Position numbers and translations under genes: made by a program | Assembly (NCBI GenBank): GCA_965603825.1 | Contig: CBFDEM010000021.1 | Span: 868,001-932,000 of the forward strand | Direction of reading: 5' to 3' | DNA from: Blepharisma stoltei ATCC 30299 | Lineage: Eukaryota > Protista > Ciliophora | Length of the DNA stretch: 64,000 nucleotides | The notes under the pieces: generated by a model | What the model was told of the DNA's origin: nothing | The model's input: the letters and a program-made list of their open reading frames with translations, nothing else | Databases searched by the model: none | Shown here: one piece after another, positions 6,331 through 33,489 of the stretch | How the letters are laid out: the number at the start of each line of letters is the position of its first letter | How positions within the stretch are numbered: the stretch's first letter is position 1

Positions 6331-7484
6331 TATAGGAGGATTAAAAGATTAAAGCTCAAGATAAAAGCTATTTATTAAGAAATAAGCCTCTGAAGGTCAA
6401 CCTTAGAATTCAATTTATTGCTAGCAGGTTTATAAGAGGATAAAAATACCCTTTTAAAGGAAAGGAAAACAATTTTAAAATATAATAAATTGATATAATC
6501 CTATTTAAAACTCATAGGAATTTTTTGTTGTAGCATGAAACTAAGAAAATAAAACGTAATTATTAAATAAGAATCGATTTAAAAGCTTCTACTTTTATCT
6601 CAAATTAGATTTTGATGCTTTAATTAATTAAAATATTTTCTCAAAATTTTGTGTTATATTATTTAAAACAAATAATAGAAAAACTTCTACATTAAAGATT
6701 AAGAAGATTTAAGAATTTTTGATAAAGCTTATAGCTAAATACTTTAATTGAAAATATTTCGAAGAAATATATATTTAGAAATTAGATTAGTTAGCCTTAC
6801 TTGAGAGATATTTAATATTAGCTGGAAGTTGATTTTCACTCAAGTTATTGGCTGCAATTGTACAGCTTTCTGCTTCAGAAACTCAAGAATTAAGAGTCAA
6901 GTTGATGATTCTACTGCACATTTGCTTTCTCAAAGCTATATCAATCCCATTTAAATCTGCTAGAAGTTCAGCCAAAGCTGATTTGTCATTATAGATTTTT
7001 TTAATTGCGCATTGATATAACAAATTATTAGAAATTCACATTGATAAATCATATTTAAAGTCGCTATATGTTGAGAACTACAAAGGTTCTTATATTTATT
7101 CAAATATTTATAATTTATAAGTCAAAATATTAAGAAATGAGATTAGTTAGGCTTGCTTGAACGATACCTTAATCTCAGCAGGGAGCTGACTAGCACTCAA
7201 GTTATTAGCTGTAATTGTGCAGCTTACTGCGCCTAAAACGCAAGAGTTTAGAGTCCAGTTTGAGGTATCTATCACAGTTCCATCACCTAGAGTCACTTCA
7301 ATTTTGTCCTTAATCAAAGTTGAAACAAGCGGATGAGCGAAATCAAGTTCAATATTTGGAGCAGAGAAACTGAGTTGATACCCAACTGAGTCAACTCTGC
7401 AAGTATCCCCATCTTGAGCAATCGAGTTAGCACAGTAAAAACAGTCAGGAGTTGTTGTGCAAGATTGGCAGGAGTTAAAGCAAG

Positions 7485-7499
7485 CTAAATAAAAATTAC
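7485..7499 (-). other. 15-nt spliceosomal intron
   Basis: GTAATTTTTATTTAG at the conserved family position. Confidence 0.8.
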
Positions 7500-8024
7500 C
7501 AACGCATGATGTCGCTCCAGCTTTATCATAGAGGAAATACCCTGAATCGCATTGAGTGCATACAGTAGGAGCTGAACACTCAGCACAGTTGCCAGGGCAA
7601 TCTACCTTACAAACATTGTTTTTTAATATTAACCCTGCAGGGCAAGTATTGCAAAAAGTTGCAGGAAGTGATCCGGCTGTTCGCAAGTTTTACAGCCACT
7701 TTTATCGCAAGAATCGCAGGCAACTGTTGAGTAGGATGACATACGGAATCTGAGCAAGTCCCTGTGCAAGCCCATCTATTGAGAGACTCTGATAACTGTT
7801 ATCAGAAAGAGTAATAGAAGTAAGGGGACTATAACTGATAATGAATGTTGCGAAGTAGTTAATTTCATACAAGAAAGCTTTAATGCCATAGCCAAAGCCA
7901 ATAACTACACTAGCTGGTTTATCATACTTTGCACCACTAACGTGTCATCGATTTTTATTCTCCCCAAGAACAGTAGTATATACATCTTCGCTGTCAAAAG
8001 AAATAATATAAAAAATCCAGGATT

Positions 8025-8039
8025 CTAAATAAAAATTAC
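8025..8039 (-). other. 15-nt spliceosomal intron
   Basis: GTAATTTTTATTTAG at the conserved family position. Confidence 0.8.
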
Positions 8040-8944
8040 TGATTGGAACATTGACGGAGAATGATTTGGTTGAACTTGTGCCACTACTGTTTATATAATC
8101 AAAATCTAAAGTACCATCAGTTGTTGATTTTGCTATATAAGATTTAGAATTGAAAGCAGAGTTTCCAAATTTCATTACTTCTGAACTAAGGGTTGATTGA
8201 AAATTTACCCAAAAACCGAATGATTGGAAGTCGGTTTGGCAAGATGAACCGTCTATGAGTCATCTCCATGAGAAGCTGCCCATATGACTGATGAACAACT
8301 AATATTTGGCTCCACATCGGCATTGGCTTGAACAGGGTCTGTGCTAGCAAAATGACTATCATCTTGTTTCACCTTGACATTTGAGCTATCGTAAAAAGGT
8401 TTGGTAAAAAAAAGGTCAAAGCAATAGGTGAAACTATCTACTTTGGCTATAGAGGCAAGCAAAAGGACGAGGAAAATATTCAATGATGGGGATAAAACCA
8501 TTTATAAGAGAAAGAAATTTCGTAGTAAATTTGTGCATGCTATTCCTAATAAGCTAATAATTTTTTTGCAAATTACAAGAGCAAGATTTTATGAATAGAC
8601 AGATATATAATTAAAATTCATATCGATCTAATAGCACAGATAAAACTCCTGCTGAAATTAAAGCTTTCAAACCTTTTTATTCGATTATAAAAAAATTTTA
8701 AAATTAAAGACAAGGTCAAATCGTTAATTTTGGAAAAAGGCATCAAGCTTGTCAATCTAAAAACAGAAAATTTTAGATTTCGGGAGCTTAAACTGAAGAA
8801 CCATTTATTATCTAAACAAATTATCGGTTTTTGAAATATGGATAGATGAAAATGGAAGATAAAAAGAACTTTCTCGCCCAGAATTTCAATTAGCAGAGAA
8901 TAAATAAATGTAAATTAAATTTAGAGGGTAAAACATTTAATTTT

Positions 8945-9420
8945 TAAAAATTACTTTTTGGAACATTAAAAGAGAATGATTTGCTGTATTTAGCGCCACT
9001 AGTGTCTATATAATCAAAATCGAAAGCACCTTCAGTTGTTGATTTTTCTATATAAGAATTAGAATTGAAAGCAGAGTTTCCAATTTTCATTACTTTTGAA
9101 CTAGGGATTGATTGGAAATTTACCCAAAGCCCAACAGATCGAGCATTTGATCTACAAGGTGTGAAGTTTATGAGTCATCTCTACTCGAAGTTGCTCATAT
9201 ATACTGATGAATAATCAAATACTGGTTCTACTGCGGAGTTAGTTGAATTGGGTCTGTGCTAACAAAATGATTACTATCTTGTTTTACCTTGACATCTGAA
9301 CTATCGTAAAAAGTTTTGGAAAAAATAAGGTCAAAGCATGGGGTGAAAGTACTTGCTTTGGCCATAGAGATAAGCAGAAGGACGAGTAAAATATTCAGTG
9401 ATGGGAATAAGCAATTTATA
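8945..9420 (-). pseudogene. Cys-rich family copy C3, 5' half (ends inside intron 1)
   Basis: Homologous to the C1/C2 N-terminus; start codon mutated; stops after GTAATTTTTA at 8945-8954. Confidence 0.8.
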
Positions 9421-9518
9421 AAAGAAATAGATTTAATAGTAAATTTATGCACATATTCTAATAAGCTAATAAGTTTTTTGGCGAATTATAAGAGCAAGGT
9501 TTTAAAATAATTATTAAA

Positions 9519-10346
9519 TATTTAGAATCCTGGATTTTTTTGATGCTAACTTGGAAATCAGATTTAATTGATATTTATAAGTTTGATAAACCATTAGGAT
9601 TTTTGCGTACTTCATTATATGCTACACCTTCTGGTGGGGTTGCTGGCTTTGGCTATGGTGTTAGAGCTTACTTATATGAAATTTCTTGGTATGGATCAGG
9701 TTGGTACTTCTTAGGCTATATGATTATGTATGATTGCGATGGTATCTACACATATTTTGATAGGACTTGTGCAGGGGCCTGCTCAGATTCCAAGTGCCAT
9801 CCTACTCATCAATGCTTCAGCTCAACAACTGCCTGCACTTCTTGCGATTCAACTGGATGCAAAGTTTGTGGAGAAACCAACAAAGATCCTTCAACTTATT
9901 GCAATCAAGACTGTCCTGCAAACTGTGATAGATGTTCATCTTCTACACTATGCACTCAATGCAAATCAGGGTCTTTCCTCTACGATAAAGCTGGAGCGGC
10001 ATTATGCATTGGTAATTTTTATTTAGCTTGCTTAGACTCCTGCACTTCTTGCACAGCAACTCCTGATTGTTTTTACTGTACTAGCTCAATTGTTCAAGTT
10101 GATTCTATTGGGTATCAGATAAGTTTCTCTGCTCCATATATTGAACTTGATTTTGCTCATCCACTTGTTTCGACTCTGACTATAAATAGCATTGGAGCGA
10201 CTTTAGATGATGGAACAGTGATAGATACCTCAAACTGGACTCTAAACTCTTGCGTTGCAAGCGCAGTAAGCTGCACAATTACAGCTAATAGCTTGAGTGT
10301 TAGTCAGCTACCTTTAAACATGGTCTTAAAGTTTAACCAAGCTTAA
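9519..10346 (+). pseudogene. Cys-rich family copy C3, 3' half (begins inside intron 1, opposite strand to the 5' half)
   Basis: Starts with TATTTAG at 9519-9525, then the conserved SWIF exon; ORF 9540-10346; intron 10012-10026. Confidence 0.8.
10012..10026 (+). other. 15-nt spliceosomal intron
   Basis: GTAATTTTTATTTAG at the conserved family position. Confidence 0.8.
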
Positions 10347-10819
10347 CTAATCTCATTTCTTTATATTTCGGGTTATAAATTATAAATAAAATACTTCAAT
10401 AAATATTTAAAATCAGTTTAAATGTTAAATAGATTCATTTATCAAAATGATTTTCTAATAATTTCTTAATGTCACGCTGTAATAAACAAATATTTTTAAT
10501 GACAGCTCTTGCTGAGCTCAAAAAGTCTATAAAATGGAGCAGACAAGCAAGCTGTTTGCAAAATTTTTGAGAAATATTTAATAAATTAAATTTTCAAAAA
10601 CTTAAAAAACCTAGCGTTTAAAAGCTAATTTTAATAAAAATTTAATTTTAATAATTAATTTTATTAATACATTATTTTAACGAGATATTATCTTAGCGTT
10701 TCTGCGAAAGAAAATGTGAGAATAAAAAAAGCCTATGATTTATAAGCAGGACTCTATTTAGATTTATATCGATTTATGATATTTTGAAATGCTTTTTATT
10801 TTATCTTTTAATTTCTTAG

Positions 10820-11140
10820 GCTGTCCTTCAAACTGTACCAAATTTCATTAGGTATAAAGTGTATTCAATATAATCAAGATGATAAGCTGGAGTGACATCA
10901 TGTGTTTGCAATTTCGATTTAGTATGCTCTAGCTCATGGTAGTTCTTGCACAGAAACTCCTGATTTTTTAAGTGTGCTAGCTTATAGAGTCGATTCTGCT
11001 GGTGATCAGCAATTTTTCTGCTTCAAATATTGATCTTGATTATTAGTAGGCACCTTAGCCTAGACTCTAAACTCTTGCGTTGCATGCGCAGTTAGCTGCA
11101 CAATTAGAGCTAATGACTTTAGTGCTAGTCAGCTCCCTGT
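10820..11140 (+). pseudogene. Highly degenerate 3' fragment of the Cys-rich family
   Basis: Remnants of DKAGVTSC, a mutated intron (GCAATTTCGATTTAG) and TLNSCVA..VSCTI..N..SASQLP. Confidence 0.65.
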
Positions 11141-11364
11141 TGATAAGAGCTATTTATTAAGACATAAGAAGAAGTAGGCCTCTATGATTAGTCTTGAAAT
11201 CTCTTTTTTGCTAGCAGATTTCGATAAAGAAATTATCAAAACAAGCTACTATATGAAATTAAAAGATCTTTAAAGTTTAAACAACTTTGAGCTTCATACC
11301 AAAACTTATTTGGAACCTTTTTATTTTAGAATATTTCCAAGAATGATGCTTTGATGGTTTTTGC

Positions 11365-22317: not shown

Positions 22318-23058
22318 TATAAGATTGAATTCTGCTATTTAAGTTTTGCATATAAATTATTTTAAATTTATTTATAATTTAACTGAATTAATGATAAAAT
22401 GAAACTTTTTCTTTTTAAATTTATCTCAAATACTAAAATTGATTGAAATAAAATCTTATTGCTTTGGCTAAATATATTTACTCACAAATATCATCTTATT
22501 CCTCCTTAAGATTGTGAAAATGACTTTACCAGCAAAAAAGCTTTAATTAATATATTTATTTTTTAATCAATTTATTCGAGCTTGCCTTTACTTTTGGAAC
22601 TCTGCATAACAAAGACTAGAGTATTATTAGTTAGAAGATTTGAAAAATTATAGCGAAATATTTTAATTGAAAATATTTCCTAGAAATATATTTAAAATTT
22701 AAGAGATGATATTAGTTAGCCTTGTTTGACAGATAATTTAATATTAGCTGAGAGCTGATTTTTGTGCAAGTTCTTACTATAATTGCACAGCTTTTTGCCT
22801 AAAAGCTCAAAAATTAAGTATCCAAGCTGATGTATCTACTGCATATTTCAAGCTTTCTTAAAACTATATCCATTCCATTTAAAACCATTAGACAAAGAAC
22901 GGCGTTTTTATACTCCATTATAGAGTTCAGCCAGATCTCGTTTGTCATTAAAGATTATTTTTTATTGCAGCAGTGATATAAAAAATTATAAAATACGCTT
23001 TGATAAATGAATCTATTTAATTATTAAATAATGCTGCTTTTCATATGTAAGATGTATA

Positions 23059-23913
23059 TTTAGAATCCTGGTTTTACTTGTTAATGTATTGGTATAATGG
23101 GCTAATTCATATTGTAATGTTTGGGCAGAATTCACTTATAAAGACTCATAATGGTGGCTATTCAAAGCCAACTGGTACTGTGGCTCTTGGCTTTGGCTAT
23201 GGTGTTAGAGCTTACTTGTATGAAATTTCTTGGTTCAGCAGATTTACTTTATCGAGCAATAGTAACCAAATTACTCTATTTGATTCGTCTGGTAACCTCA
23301 AATATCTAGATGGGACTTGCACAGTAACTTGCCCAGATTCCTGGTGTCATCCTACTCAAAAATGCTTAGGCTTGGCAACTTCCTGCTCTTCTTGCGATTC
23401 AACTGGATGTAAAGCTTGCTGAACAAACAAGGATCCTACAACTTTTTGCAATACTGACTGCCCTCCAATCTGTGCTAGATGTTTATCTTCTACAGTATGC
23501 TCTCGATGCAATTCAGGGTATTTCCTCTATGATAAATCTGGGGCGACATCATGCGTTGGTAATTTTTATTTAGCTTGTATTGACTCCTGCGATTCTTGCA
23601 CAACAACTCCTGATTGTTTTTACTGTGCTAACTCAATTGCTCAAGATGGGTTGACTTGTAGAGTTGATTCTATTGGGTACCAACTCAGCTTCTCTATCCA
23701 AATATTGAACTTGATTTTGCTCATCCGCTTGTTTCGACTCTGACTAAAGGCACCATTGAAGTGACTCTAGGTGATGCAACAGTGATTGATACCTCAAGCT
23801 GGACTCTAAACTCTTGCGTTGCAGGCGCAGTAAGCTGCACAATTACAACTACTAACTTGAGTGCTAGTCAGCTCCCTGCTGAGATTAAGGTATCGTTTAA
23901 CCAAGCTAACTAA
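23059..23913 (+). pseudogene. Cys-rich family copy C5, 3' part only (starts inside intron 1)
   Basis: Begins TATTTAG then the SW exon; intron 23559-23573; frameshift near 23697. Confidence 0.8.
23559..23573 (+). other. 15-nt spliceosomal intron
   Basis: GTAATTTTTATTTAG at the conserved family position. Confidence 0.8.
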
Positions 23914-24078
23914 TCTCATTTCTTAATATTTTATAAATTATAAATAAAAATATTTCATAAAACCACTTTAGATTTATTATCAAAATGCATTTTATAATAA
24001 TGTTTTAATTCACGCTGTAATAAAACAAGGTCTTTAATGACAAAGCAGCTCTGGCTGAGCTAATTACATTATTTAAAG

Positions 24079-29326: not shown

Positions 29327-30403
29327 CACGCTCCTAATAAAGGGACAAAGGTTTTACAATAAGGCTTTTTAATTTCATATAAAATTTTATTAGCTATCAA
29401 AAGCTAAGAGTAAGACACTATTTGTCGAATGTTGAATAAAAAATAGTGCAAATCGTTTATTAGCATAAGAAAATTGTTTAACTTCGCTGTCAAACGAATC
29501 TTGTAAAAAATATTTGCTTATCAAACAACTATAATCTGTCTTATAAGAAGATTAAAAGATGAAAGTTCAAGATAAAGCTATTTATTAAGAAATAAAAAAA
29601 AATAGCATATGGAGGTCAGCCTTGAAATTCAATTATATGAGGGAAAAAATTACCTTTTTAAAAGATATAATTTTAAAATATAATAATCGATATAAATTTA
29701 AATAGAATCCTGCTTATATATTGATAGATATTTTTTATTCTCGCATTTCTTTTCGAAGAAACTAAGATAATATTACGTTAAAATAATGAGTTAATAAAAT
29801 TTAACTAAAAAATTCAATTTTGTTATTATATTTAATTTAAAAATCAAAATATTTTCTAAAAATTTAGGAACAGCTTGAATTTCTGCTCTATTTATAGATT
29901 TTTTGAGCTTCAGCCAGAGCTGATTTGTCATTAAAGATCTTTTTTGATTTCAGCGTGACATTAATAATTATTAGTAAAAGCATTTTGATAAATAAATCTA
30001 TTTGATATTTAAGCTGATTGTAATATTTTTATTTATAAGTCAAAATATTAAGAAATGAGATTAGCGCAGTAAGTTGCACAATTACAACTAATAACTTGAG
30101 TGTTAGTCAGCTCCCTGCTGATATTAAGGTATCGTTCAAGCAAGCCTAGCCTGCAACGCAAGAGTTTAGAGTCCAACTTGAGGTATCAATCACTGTTGCA
30201 TCACCTAGAGTCACTTCAATAGTACCTTTAGTCAGAGTCGAAACAAGGGGATGAGCAAAATCAAGTTCAATATTTGGACTAGAGAAACTGAGCTGATACC
30301 CAACAGAATCAACTCTACAAGTCAACCCATCTTGAACAATTAAGTTAGCACACTTAAAACAATCAGGAGTTGTTGTGCAAGATCTGGCAGGAGTCAGTAC
30401 AAG

Positions 30404-30418: not shown

Positions 30419-30921
30419 CAACGCATGATGTCGCTCCAGCTTGATCATAGAGGAAATACCCTGAATTGCATTGAGTGCATACTGTAGAAGATGTTCATTT
30501 AGCACAGTTTTGCAGGGGAGTTAGCATTGCAAAAAGTTGAAGGATCTTTGATGGTTGTTCCACAAGCTTGACATCCAGTTGAATCGCAAGAAGTGCAGGC
30601 AGCTGCTAAGCTTAAGCATTTTTGAGTAGGATGGCACCAGGAATCTGAGCAGGTCCCTGTACAAGTCCCATCGATGTTTTTTTATTTTGTCCGAGAAATC
30701 AAATGCAATAATTGAGTTAAAAGGAGTCCAGATACTAGCTGAACTGAACCAAATAAGTTCATACAAAATGAGCTTTAACACCAAAACCAAAGCCAACAGC
30801 CCCACCAGTTGGAGAATAATAATCACCATTACGGCTGTTTGTTATTGAATCCTGCCCAAACATAATAATCATAGTGTTCATGTCATTCCAAAACATCACA
30901 ATAAAAATCCAGGAGTCTAAA

Positions 30922-31392
30922 TATACCTCTCGCAGATGAGAAGCAGCATTATTTACTAATTAAGATAAGCTTAGGAAAGTGTTAAGATAAGATGGCCTTA
31001 TGATTTCAGTTTTAACAAATAGAAAAGTATTTAAGGATCAACAGCTGCCCTTTATAAACTGTTCCAGCTAGAAATGAACTTCTAGTTAGTGCATTTTCCA
31101 ACTAGAACATTGTTGAAAGTAGAGCTATCTAGCGTTAAAACCTTTTTTTCAAGTGCCACTGAAAGAAAATGCTGGGCGAGCGATGCAAAACCTGCCCGAA
31201 CACAATTTCCTATTGCTTTAGACTCAATTTTCTTCTCTTTTTGGTTTCTGACAGCAGCAAACTCCTCAACTCTTAACAAGCCTAGAAGAGAAAGGGTAAT
31301 CGTCAATTTATTTGAGTGTTTAAATTTTAGATAAATATTTTTTTTATGGCTGTGGCTAGATTTATATGGCAAATACTTACAGAATAAGTATA
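30922..31392. mobile_element. TA-bounded IES-like insertion (469 bp plus one TA)
   Basis: CTAAA-TA-[insert]-TA-AAAATTAC. Excision leaving one TA restores the exact 15-nt intron. Both ends read TATAC inward. Confidence 0.8.
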
Positions 31393-33489
31393 AAAATTAC
31401 TTCTTGGAACATTAAAAGAGAATGATTTGCTCTTTGTACTGCCACTACCGTCTATATAATCAAAATCTAAAGTACCTTCAGTTGTTGATTTTCCTATATA
31501 AGAATTAGAATTGAAAGCAGAGTTTCCAATTTTCATTACTTCTGTGCTAAGGGTTGATTAAGAGATGCATAATTGCCACAAGGTGTGAAGTTTATGAGTC
31601 ATCTCCACGAGAAGTTGTTCATATGGACTGATGAGCAACTAAAAGCTGGTTCCACATCTGAATTGGCTTGAGCAGGGCTTGTGTTAGCAAAATGAGTGCT
31701 ATCTTGTTTTACCTTGACATCTGAGCTAGAGTAAAAAGGTTTGGTAAAAATAAGGTCAAAGCATGGGGTGAAAGTATCTGATTTGACCATAGAGGAAAGC
31801 AAAAGGACGAGGAAAGTATTCAGTGATAGGGAATAAACCATTTATAAGAGAAAAAAATTTATTAAATTTATGCACATTTTTCCTAATAAAGTTTTTTGCG
31901 AATCATAAGGAAAATTAAAATTTTTGACCTTCTTAAATTTTAAAACTTATTTTAATTTAATAAAATACTACATTCAATAAATACCCAATTAAAATATCTA
32001 CTTCTCTGATTTTCTAAATTTTTTCTAAAGTTAATAAACAAAAAAATATCGAAGCGAAAAAAAAAATTTCTCTAGAGACTTTAAACATTTTTCTTAATCT
32101 AATACTTAAATATCTCTCTTTTACTAAGAATAGACAGATATTAAAGTAAACCTCATATCTATCTAATAAAAAGATAGGGCTGCTGAAAATTTAAGATTTC
32201 AAAACCTTATTCAATTCCTTAAAAAATGCAAAAAATTGAAGCTCAAGATAAAGTGAAATCATTTATTTTGGAAAAGGGATCCAGCTTATCAATCTAAAAA
32301 ACGAAAATTCTAGATTTTTGAAGCTTACATGAAAACCAATTATTATTTCAAACAAATATCGATTTTGAAATAGAGATGAATAAATATGAAAGGCAAAAAG
32401 GACTTTCTTTGCAAAAATTATTCAACAAAGAATAAATAAAACGCGAATTAGGATCAGAGGGTAAATATATATTTAACTTCTATTCTTTAATATTCCCCAG
32501 AATTTTATTGCACATTTTAAAAAATATAGAGGAGCTTTTACTTGGAAAATAGAAAAATGCGAAAGCAGCTTGCTATTTTTTCAATTTCCCCTATATTAAA
32601 TTCATAAGCAAACAGCTAATTTTATTTTAGATTTATAAAAAATTATTTGTTGAATATTGGATAAAATTTATTAAAAATGTTTAGCTAAATCCTTGAAAAA
32701 TATTCACTTATCAGATAAGTGCTGATAAATTTATATGAGGATTAAGCATGCGACTTAATTAAGAAATAAGAAGAAATAGGCCTCTATGATCAATCTTGAA
32801 ATCCATTTTTTGCCTGCAGATTTTGATAGAGATTAAGTATTAAAATTTTAATTTATTTGATTTAATAGAATTGAGCAATTTAAAGCATGCAATTCATGAC
32901 AAAATCAAATATTCTGTCGAAAAAGAGAAGAAAATTTCCTTAGTTTCTACGAAATAAAATGCGAGAATAAACAATGCATATAATTTATAAGCAGGACTCT
33001 ATCTAGATTTATATTAATTTATGATATTTTAAAATTTTTTTCCCTTTTATTTCCTTTAAAAAGGAATTTTTACTTTCATATAAATCTAGCGCCAATAAAT
33101 TGAATGTCAAATTTGGTCTTCAGAGACCTATTTCTTCTTATTTCTAGGTAAAAAGCTATATATTTAGTTTTATTTCTTCCAAGCCTTTTTAGCATTGAGT
33201 TCACGTTTAGCCAAGCCTAACTAATCTCATTTTTTTAATATTTCGGATTATAAACTAAATCTATTTCATTTTAAATATTTATAGTTCTTAATATATAGGT
33301 TTAAATAATTAAATAAATTCATTATAAAACGTATTTGTAATAAGCTTTTATATCACGCTGTAATCTTTTACCTTTAGCTTCAGCAGCTATGCTGCCACAG
33401 GAATTATCGATCCCCAGCATTTCTTCCGGTTTCTACCACAGATTCTCCTCAGTTTTTCCAAGTTCTCTTTATTTTCCCTTCAACTTTTG

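Follow-up and report, generated by a model that had tools for sequence, protein, structure and literature searches.

Organization of the gene cluster

The window, by which we mean the whole stretch of 64,000 nucleotides that was analysed (C21:868,001-932,000), carries copies of a gene family in the somatic genome of Blepharisma stoltei ATCC 30299 (Table 1). Members of this family begin with a signal peptide and an N-terminal domain (exon 1), which a 15-nt intron separates from the cysteine-rich repeats of exon 2. The copies are 71-84% identical to each other, and most of them contain frameshifts. Since the letters of the pseudogenes were confirmed by short-read contigs, these frameshifts are not assembly errors. 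The genes of the window have 15-nt introns and in-frame TGA codons, which fits the published somatic genome of B. stoltei (PMC9942856).

With the exons searched separately, no Pfam family was found for either half of the copy C3, which is described below, or for C1, and a search of the protein atlas returned no usable match. The gene family is lineage-specific, and the cluster is a tandem, decaying one that is made up largely of pseudogenes. Because the copy C3 is dead and the cluster is largely pseudogenic, a functional consequence of the rearrangement reported here is not evident.

Table 1. Gene copies, junctions and TA-bounded elements of the cluster, with positions in the window.
Feature	Position	Strand	Evidence
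C0	just before the window	-	
C1	1573-3422	-	
C2	7105-8946	-	
C2 exon-2 region, frameshifted; second 15-nt intron at 7485-7499	7105-8024	-	homology map, frames, RNA contig
C2 15-nt intron GTAATTTTTATTTAG; TA 8030-8031 is the germline insertion site	8025-8039	-	X8 splicing; X4 contig 11
C2 upstream region (U)	8502-8946	-	homologous to C0, C1 and C6 upstream up to TA 8945-8946
J1, TA junction between C2 upstream region and inverted block	8945-8946	.	X4 contig 13, X7 unitig break, X1 bridging contig
C3, 5' part of the split intron GTAATTTTTA	8954-8945	-	window letters
C3 exon-1 half, pseudogene	8955-9416	-	lesions; letters confirmed by X1 and X8 contigs, 0 differences
C3 promoter-proximal upstream DNA	9417-9504	-	alignment; homology to other copies ends at TA 9503-9504
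AT-only filler of 14 bases (AAATAATTATTAAA) with a TA on either side; may be a fossil of hybrid IES ends	9505-9518	.	
J2, TA and 3' part of the split intron (TATTTAG)	9519-9525	+	window letters; bridged by X1 and X4 contigs
C3 exon-2 half	9526-10346	+	open, 272 codons; spliced 15-nt intron 10011-10025; transcribed
C5 exon-2-only copy; about 47 nt of the intronic element before TATTTAG	23017-23068	+	
C5, exon 2 only	23070-23946	+	
C6	30024-32482	-	
C6 TA-bounded element, about 467 bp, retained in the soma at the homologous intronic TA	30917-31400	-	
C6 second unique TA-bounded insert, about 210 bp, upstream region	31916-32126 (insert 31918-32124)	-	alignment

Structure of the split copy

C3 consists of two adjoining halves on opposite strands. 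In gene orientation, the exon-1 half ends with CCAAAAA followed by GTAATTTTTA, with the TA of junction J1 at 8945-8946, and the exon-2 half begins with TATTTAG followed by AATCCTGG, with the TA of junction J2 at 9519-9520. The coordinates and letters of both halves had been given in a preliminary description of this DNA and were found to be correct when rechecked in the window. Joining the halves at their common TA yields GTAATTTTTATTTAG, a 15-nt sequence that agrees letter for letter with the intron of C1 and that of C2, and the reading frame is kept across the rebuilt join (FNVPK before and KSWIF after it). An inversion of 8945-9520 thus restores the exact intron, as had been claimed.

The flipped block measures about 560-575 bp and contains exon 1 together with 88 bp of the promoter-proximal DNA upstream of it and the first 10 of the 15 intron nucleotides. 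In the unflipped remainder of C3, the last 7 nt of the intron are followed by exon 2 and the 3' flank. A simple two-break inversion rebuilds the intron exactly, yet it leaves 14 extra bases of unassigned origin at J2. The first four of these filler bases match the start of the insert upstream of C6, and the last eleven together with the TA match the stub of C5; both matches are so short and AT-rich that they carry no weight. That two adjoining halves of about 1.3 kb of gene should be broken in an exactly complementary way would be unexpected by chance except at a hotspot, and this site is a hotspot.

The preliminary description had also reported a match between the bases before 9519 and the remnant of the element at C5, which it called weak and which looked as if a further TA-to-TA deletion of 28 bp had occurred. 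The match itself exists, as the 13-nt sequence TAATTATTAAATA at 9508-9520 is found again at 23018-23030. It is indeed weak, because the 13-mer is of low complexity and has a second, unrelated copy at 6557, and about 1 in 500 of the AT-only 13-mers of the window that end in TA match the element by chance. The link to C5 is kept as a weak lead only, and the proposed deletion would rest on this low-complexity 13-mer. Short inverted repeats at the two junctions were considered as a substrate of the inversion and rejected: the pair (16 nt, 81%) is no better than ten other AT-rich pairs in 700 nt and is not centred on the TA.

Decay and expression of the two halves

In the exon-1 half, the ATG is replaced (N at 9414-9416), a frameshift occurs near 9230, and a TAG stands in place of a conserved TGG. 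This half is dead. In the whole cluster, the exon-2 half of C3 is the only exon 2 whose frame is open throughout (272 codons), and its dN/dS of 0.7-1.4 does not separate a fast-evolving gene from a young pseudogene. Its first in-frame ATG (9543) is not followed by a signal peptide.

The RNA-type run X8 omits exactly 15 nt at 8025, 7485 and 10011, and the omission at 8025 demonstrates that the C2 intron is real. The exon-2 half is covered by an RNA contig at 9581-10213 that is spliced at 10011; its depth of 132 is the highest among the X8 RNA contigs on 7000-11000, a measure that cannot rank genes. The exon-1 half is covered by an RNA contig at 8920-9306 with a depth of 12, which reads through the broken 5' splice site. 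The preliminary description had proposed a search for RNA that joins the halves; X8 holds no contig that connects 8955 to 9526, although contigs cannot exclude rare molecules.

The contig of the spliced C2 transcript in X8 differs from the assembly at 8169, 8173 and 8183 and then continues with C3-like letters (joint 8213 to 9154). This contig probably represents an allele or a second strain of the mating time course.

Contig support for the junctions

The germline study of B. stoltei was based on short-read sequencing of four sucrose-gradient fractions (PMC9942856). Study P2, comprising the runs X4-X7 from four samples, fits these fractions, and we infer that it is the micronucleus-enriched set and that X4 is rich in germline DNA. 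A junction was regarded as bridged by a contig that extended 31 letters past it. The X1 contigs cover 8158-9077 including J1 and 9322-9858 including J2 without a difference from the assembly, and X4 contig 14 covers 9322-9747 with J2 unbroken. Two further contigs fall below the 31-letter threshold, namely an X7 contig at 8158-8974, which extends only 28 letters past J1, and the X8 contig at 8920-9306, with only about 26 letters to the left of J1.

The preliminary description had reckoned with an assembly artefact. A chimera of paralogues made by the long-read assembler would be in line with the many 31-mers that the paralogues have in common and with the frequent contig breaks in the region. 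However, independent short-read contigs run across both junctions in X1 and across J2 in X4 with 0 differences, and an artefact is therefore refuted and hardly conceivable. It had also been proposed to look for both orientations of 8945-9520. An opposite-strand joint 8946/9519, which would mark the other orientation of the block, was found in the contigs of no run.

Several irregularities of the contigs were noted in the same region. An X7 contig starting at 9515 bears 10 extra letters, TCCAGGATTC, that together with 9515-9534 form a perfect 30-nt palindrome centred on the TA 9519/20, which is exactly the pattern of a k=31 unitig at a true fold-back. A fold-back artefact of the library that started from the natural 10-nt palindrome TAAATATTTA could explain it, as could a real head-to-head molecule at this TA. 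The stretch 9144-9277 has a depth of about 2 in both P2 runs and of 28-80 alongside, and it is covered by X1 and X8. Contigs of X1 and X7 join C2-like letters (to 8352) through GTAG to 9275. The low depth and this joint suggest a second haplotype or a converted variant of the exon-1 half, with the caveat that coverage holes prove nothing. Two loose ends of the MAC-type run X1, at 8691 and 9425, were dismissed as extra junctions, as they are unrelated somatic loci aligned over 18-nt words.

Germline-limited DNA at the intronic site

The genome of B. stoltei contains about 40,000 IESs, three quarters of which are TA-bound and about 70% of which are intragenic, introns included (PMC9942856). The TA-bound IESs are removed by a PiggyMac-type excisase (Seah et al. 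2023, PMC9942856). For the detection of germline-limited DNA, the loose ends of contigs were searched for in the somatic assembly (41.46 Mb, 64 contigs).

In C2, X4 contig 11 (1350 nt) follows exon 2 (7494-8031), passes through the intronic TA 8030-8031 and runs on for at least 812 further nucleotides. This germline stretch starts with TACCTCTCGCAC, the longer reading of its start being TACCTCTCGCACAAGAAAAGC, and its first 30 nt are absent from the somatic assembly. At 23 positions (77%), the same 30 nt agree with the E2-proximal end of the element retained by C6 at the homologous TA. The element has an E2-proximal end that resembles TACCTCTCGCA and, in C6, an E1-proximal end that closes with CAGAATAAGTA, and the roughly 47 nt before TATTTAG in C5 represent the same E2-proximal end. 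Since the element occurs in C2 as germline-only DNA, in C6 as a retained element and in C5 as a remnant, it must date back to the ancestor of the family. The family thus has a conserved IES site at the intronic TA, where the element is excised in C2, retained in C6 and truncated in C5.

At J1, X4 contig 13 (1852 nt) matches only 8686-8946, with both ends at TAs, and then continues for about 997 nt that are unlike anything in 7000-11000, while the X7 unitigs break at 8945. The run-on of this contig and the X7 break identify J1 as a place where germline-only DNA is removed. The TA at 8945-8946 is present, and X4 holds extra DNA at the site that X1 bridges; the left end of this extra DNA is seen in X4, and its right end would be marked by the X7 unitig break at 8945. 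J1 thus behaves like an ordinary TA-bound IES-excision junction of B. stoltei (PMC9942856). The earlier proposal that the gene was broken exactly on an IES boundary was borne out by both sites, the homologous TA of C2 being followed by at least 812 germline nucleotides in X4 and J1 by about 1 kb of unlike DNA.

Further loose ends in X4 and X7, at 9336 and 9741, are likewise absent from the somatic assembly. The TA 9743-9744 in exon 2 of C3 is a candidate germline insertion site: to either side of it, at 9741 and 9747, X4 has loose ends with sequence missing from the somatic genome. Overall, X4 contigs leave the somatic sequence at 8185-8188, 8502-8507, 8686-8689 and 9743-9744, and a TA could lie at each of these points. 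Within 1.6 kb, the germline may accordingly carry several additional insertions, one of them inside the open exon 2 of C3. A loose end at 9337-9366 in X4 and X7 consists of exon-1-like sequence (ACATAGGTGAAATC...) that has at least 31 nt in common with exon 1 of C3 and is absent from the somatic genome. From this germline-limited exon-1-like sequence it follows that the germline holds extra fragments of the gene family.

Ends of the inverted block

The upstream homology of C3 to C0, C1 and C2 ends at the TA 9503-9504. The insert of about 210 bp upstream of C6 sits at the TA equivalent to this right end of the block and is a candidate for a second retained IES in the same copy. At the other end, the upstream homology of C0, C1 and C6 continues beyond the TA 8945-8946, where C2 stops; in C0 and C1, the upstream region proceeds past the equivalent of 8946 as TTNNNTGAGATTACTTCT. 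The block thus ends on both sides at a TA where TA-bounded inserts are found in sister copies, and it matches a single macronuclear-destined segment with an IES site at either end.

Origin of the rearrangement

Taken together, the data speak for a dead gene that was rearranged long ago and inherited in this form, rather than for a fresh cutting error or a scrambled gene that still works. A fresh error, in the form of a fixed mistake of programmed excision, had been put forward in the preliminary description. In this case, the excisase would have cut the intronic IES boundary and a distant TA while the current macronucleus developed, the ends would have been joined wrongly, and the inversion would exist in the soma only. 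Such an event would be consistent with the TA at both junctions, a dinucleotide that is its own reverse complement, with the position of J1 on an IES boundary, and with the low-frequency erroneous excision of retained DNA reported for B. stoltei (PMC9942856). Nevertheless, it requires an unrearranged germline, whereas J2 is uninterrupted in the presumably germline-rich X4, a run dominated by IES-containing forms. Moreover, neither the other orientation nor a different junction occurs in the contigs of any run, X1 bridges both junctions, and all copies in a highly polyploid nucleus would have to come to carry the event. The three lesions in the exon-1 half argue for age. A somatic error of this kind is therefore very unlikely. 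A working scrambled gene, whose halves would be reunited either in DNA at some stage or in RNA to give a full-length product, finds a precedent in the two-segment opposite-strand loci that were called scrambled in Blepharisma americanum (PMC6101598), and both halves of C3 are transcribed. An inverted germline segment is indeed indicated by the strand switch at J2, which is unbroken in X4. However, a colinear somatic gene was not found, as the somatic assembly and the X1 contigs themselves hold the inverted state. A colinear transcript was not found either among the RNA contigs, which rare RNAs can escape; the RNA contig of exon 1 extends past the broken splice site as far as 8920, and the exon-1 half, which has no ATG, contains a frameshift and a TAG. 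Functional scrambling or trans-splicing is accordingly highly improbable. The suggestion of incipient scrambling, which had also been made, holds in the weak sense of an inverted retained segment but not in the sense of a reordering of DNA or of a transcript that joins the halves, of which the contigs contain none.

For the inherited rearrangement, a single germline inversion with breaks in or at the flanking IESs, followed by somatic excision that trims J1, has in our assessment an even chance of being correct. It would have started from a colinear C3 on the plus strand, arranged head-to-head with C2. One inversion in the germline, with its two breaks in or at the ends of the IESs that flank the promoter-proximal and exon-1 segment, would have turned this segment around. 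From between the upstream region of C2 and the exon-1 half, excision would then remove germline-only DNA of at least about 1 kb and leave a clean TA at J1, whereas J2 would already be joined in the germline, with a leftover stub too short for excision. Because the IESs are removed, the soma would show a base-perfect flip at J1. The halves are not reunited, and the exon-2 half is transcribed and spliced alone beside what would now be a divergent promoter region. We infer for this course of events that the germline DNA at J1 ends at the TA of exon 1, that a single inversion was the origin and that the filler stems from IES ends. Several points count against it: J2 carries 14 unassigned bases, C3 before the inversion needs to have only about 90 bp of its own upstream DNA, and C5 demonstrates that an exon-2-only module with a remnant of the element exists independently. 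Alternatively, an exon-1-only fragment and a C5-like exon-2-only module, which were never one copy, may each have been cut short at one and the same IES hotspot. They would have become neighbours in the course of the duplications and deletions by which the cluster was formed, and the true 3' half of the exon-1 copy may lie in the germline-only DNA beyond J1. This multi-step juxtaposition, the main rival of the inversion, is possible but rather unlikely. It agrees with C5, which was independently cut at the same place and whose stub begins within 1-3 nt of the position of the 13-mer match at J2, with the many fragments and small inversions of the cluster, and with the germline-limited exon-1-like sequence at the loose end at 9336. 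The three lesions in the exon-1 half as compared to none in the longer exon-2 half (p about 0.05) hint at separate histories of the halves. In maximum-likelihood analyses, each half gave a star-like tree in which no fork was supported; these trees leave room for separate origins and cannot show a common history. On the other hand, the juxtaposition needs at least two events plus adjacency, whereas one inversion accounts for both junctions with no overlap and no loss. In addition, the weak exon-2 tree does not pair C3 with C5, and the 13-mer is of low complexity and found elsewhere too.

Relation to known systems

C3 resembles the TA-bound IESs of B. stoltei (PMC9942856) in its TA junction, in the germline-only DNA at J1 and at the TA of the C2 intron, and in the intragenic, intronic position of the site. 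The homologous elements that are retained in C6 and excised in C2 fit the "continuum" of excision described in the same study. Unlike in the usual IESs of this species, the IES site of C3 coincides with the strand change of the gene halves, and one flank of J1 is the upstream region of a neighbouring gene instead of the other half of the intron. The retained IES of C6 belongs to the same gene family, lies at the same intronic TA and is an element of the same kind; it represents a simple failure of excision, in contrast to the rearranged flanks of C3.

With DNA amplified from single cells, two-segment "scrambled" germline loci on opposite strands have been described for B. americanum and Loxodes (Maurer-Alcala et al. 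2018, PMC6101598). C3 shares with them the two large segments on opposite strands, and it likewise comes from a heterotrich, as do the loci of B. americanum. In those loci, however, a colinear transcript defines the somatic product, whereas the somatic DNA of C3 is inverted and no joined RNA was seen. Compared to scrambled genes of the Oxytricha type with inverted MDSs (PMC9797194), C3 likewise has a retained segment that is inverted between two germline IES sites, but it has no unscrambling, no pointer beyond the TA and no restored gene, and it is associated with a PiggyMac-type excisase instead of the spirotrich machinery. Models for spirotrichs assume that recombination within IESs inverts MDSs, with an inverted segment as the postulated first step (PMC9797194). 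It is conceivable, although doubtful, that the segment of C3, flipped between its two IESs, shows gene scrambling at its first step, natural and unrepaired, in a ciliate that branched off early and relies on PiggyMac. Such a flip could have arisen by recombination within the IESs, or by an excisase that cut both TAs with re-ligation in reverse, and would then have become heritable. We file C3 as an IES-associated germline rearrangement in a decaying cluster of paralogues.

C3 links the rearrangement of a heterotrich gene to conserved IES sites, with one intronic TA at which the element is excised (C2), retained (C6) or truncated (C5) and at which the strand switches in C3. It also illustrates that IESs can mask untidy germline breakpoints, so that a base-perfect flip remains in the soma. 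For "scrambled" loci in Blepharisma that are called by mapping transcripts to the germline (PMC6101598), caution is advised, since the transcript of a paralogue would map to C3 in two inverted pieces. If it is true that such flips recur, some of the published two-segment loci of Blepharisma may be dead paralogues like C3.

Further rearrangements of the gene family

Opposite-strand joints of 7146/7148 with 7231/7237, which were found in three DNA runs, proved to be C6 contigs. Relative to C2, C6 contains a micro-inversion of 84 bp (7146-7237 compared to 30064-30148), and a related inverted fragment lies at 11052-11143. At C21:794,843-795,866, a 146-nt fragment of exon 1 adjoins the 3' flank of a partial exon 2. 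The homology of this exon 2 starts just after the equivalent of the TA 9743/4. The idea that these fragments start at IES-equivalent positions was rejected, as it does not hold for the exon-1 fragment and a TA is missing from the junction of the exon-2 fragment. The upstream region also occurs alone, without a gene half, at C21:854141-854459 and C19:56892-57146, and thus behaves as a repeat of its own.
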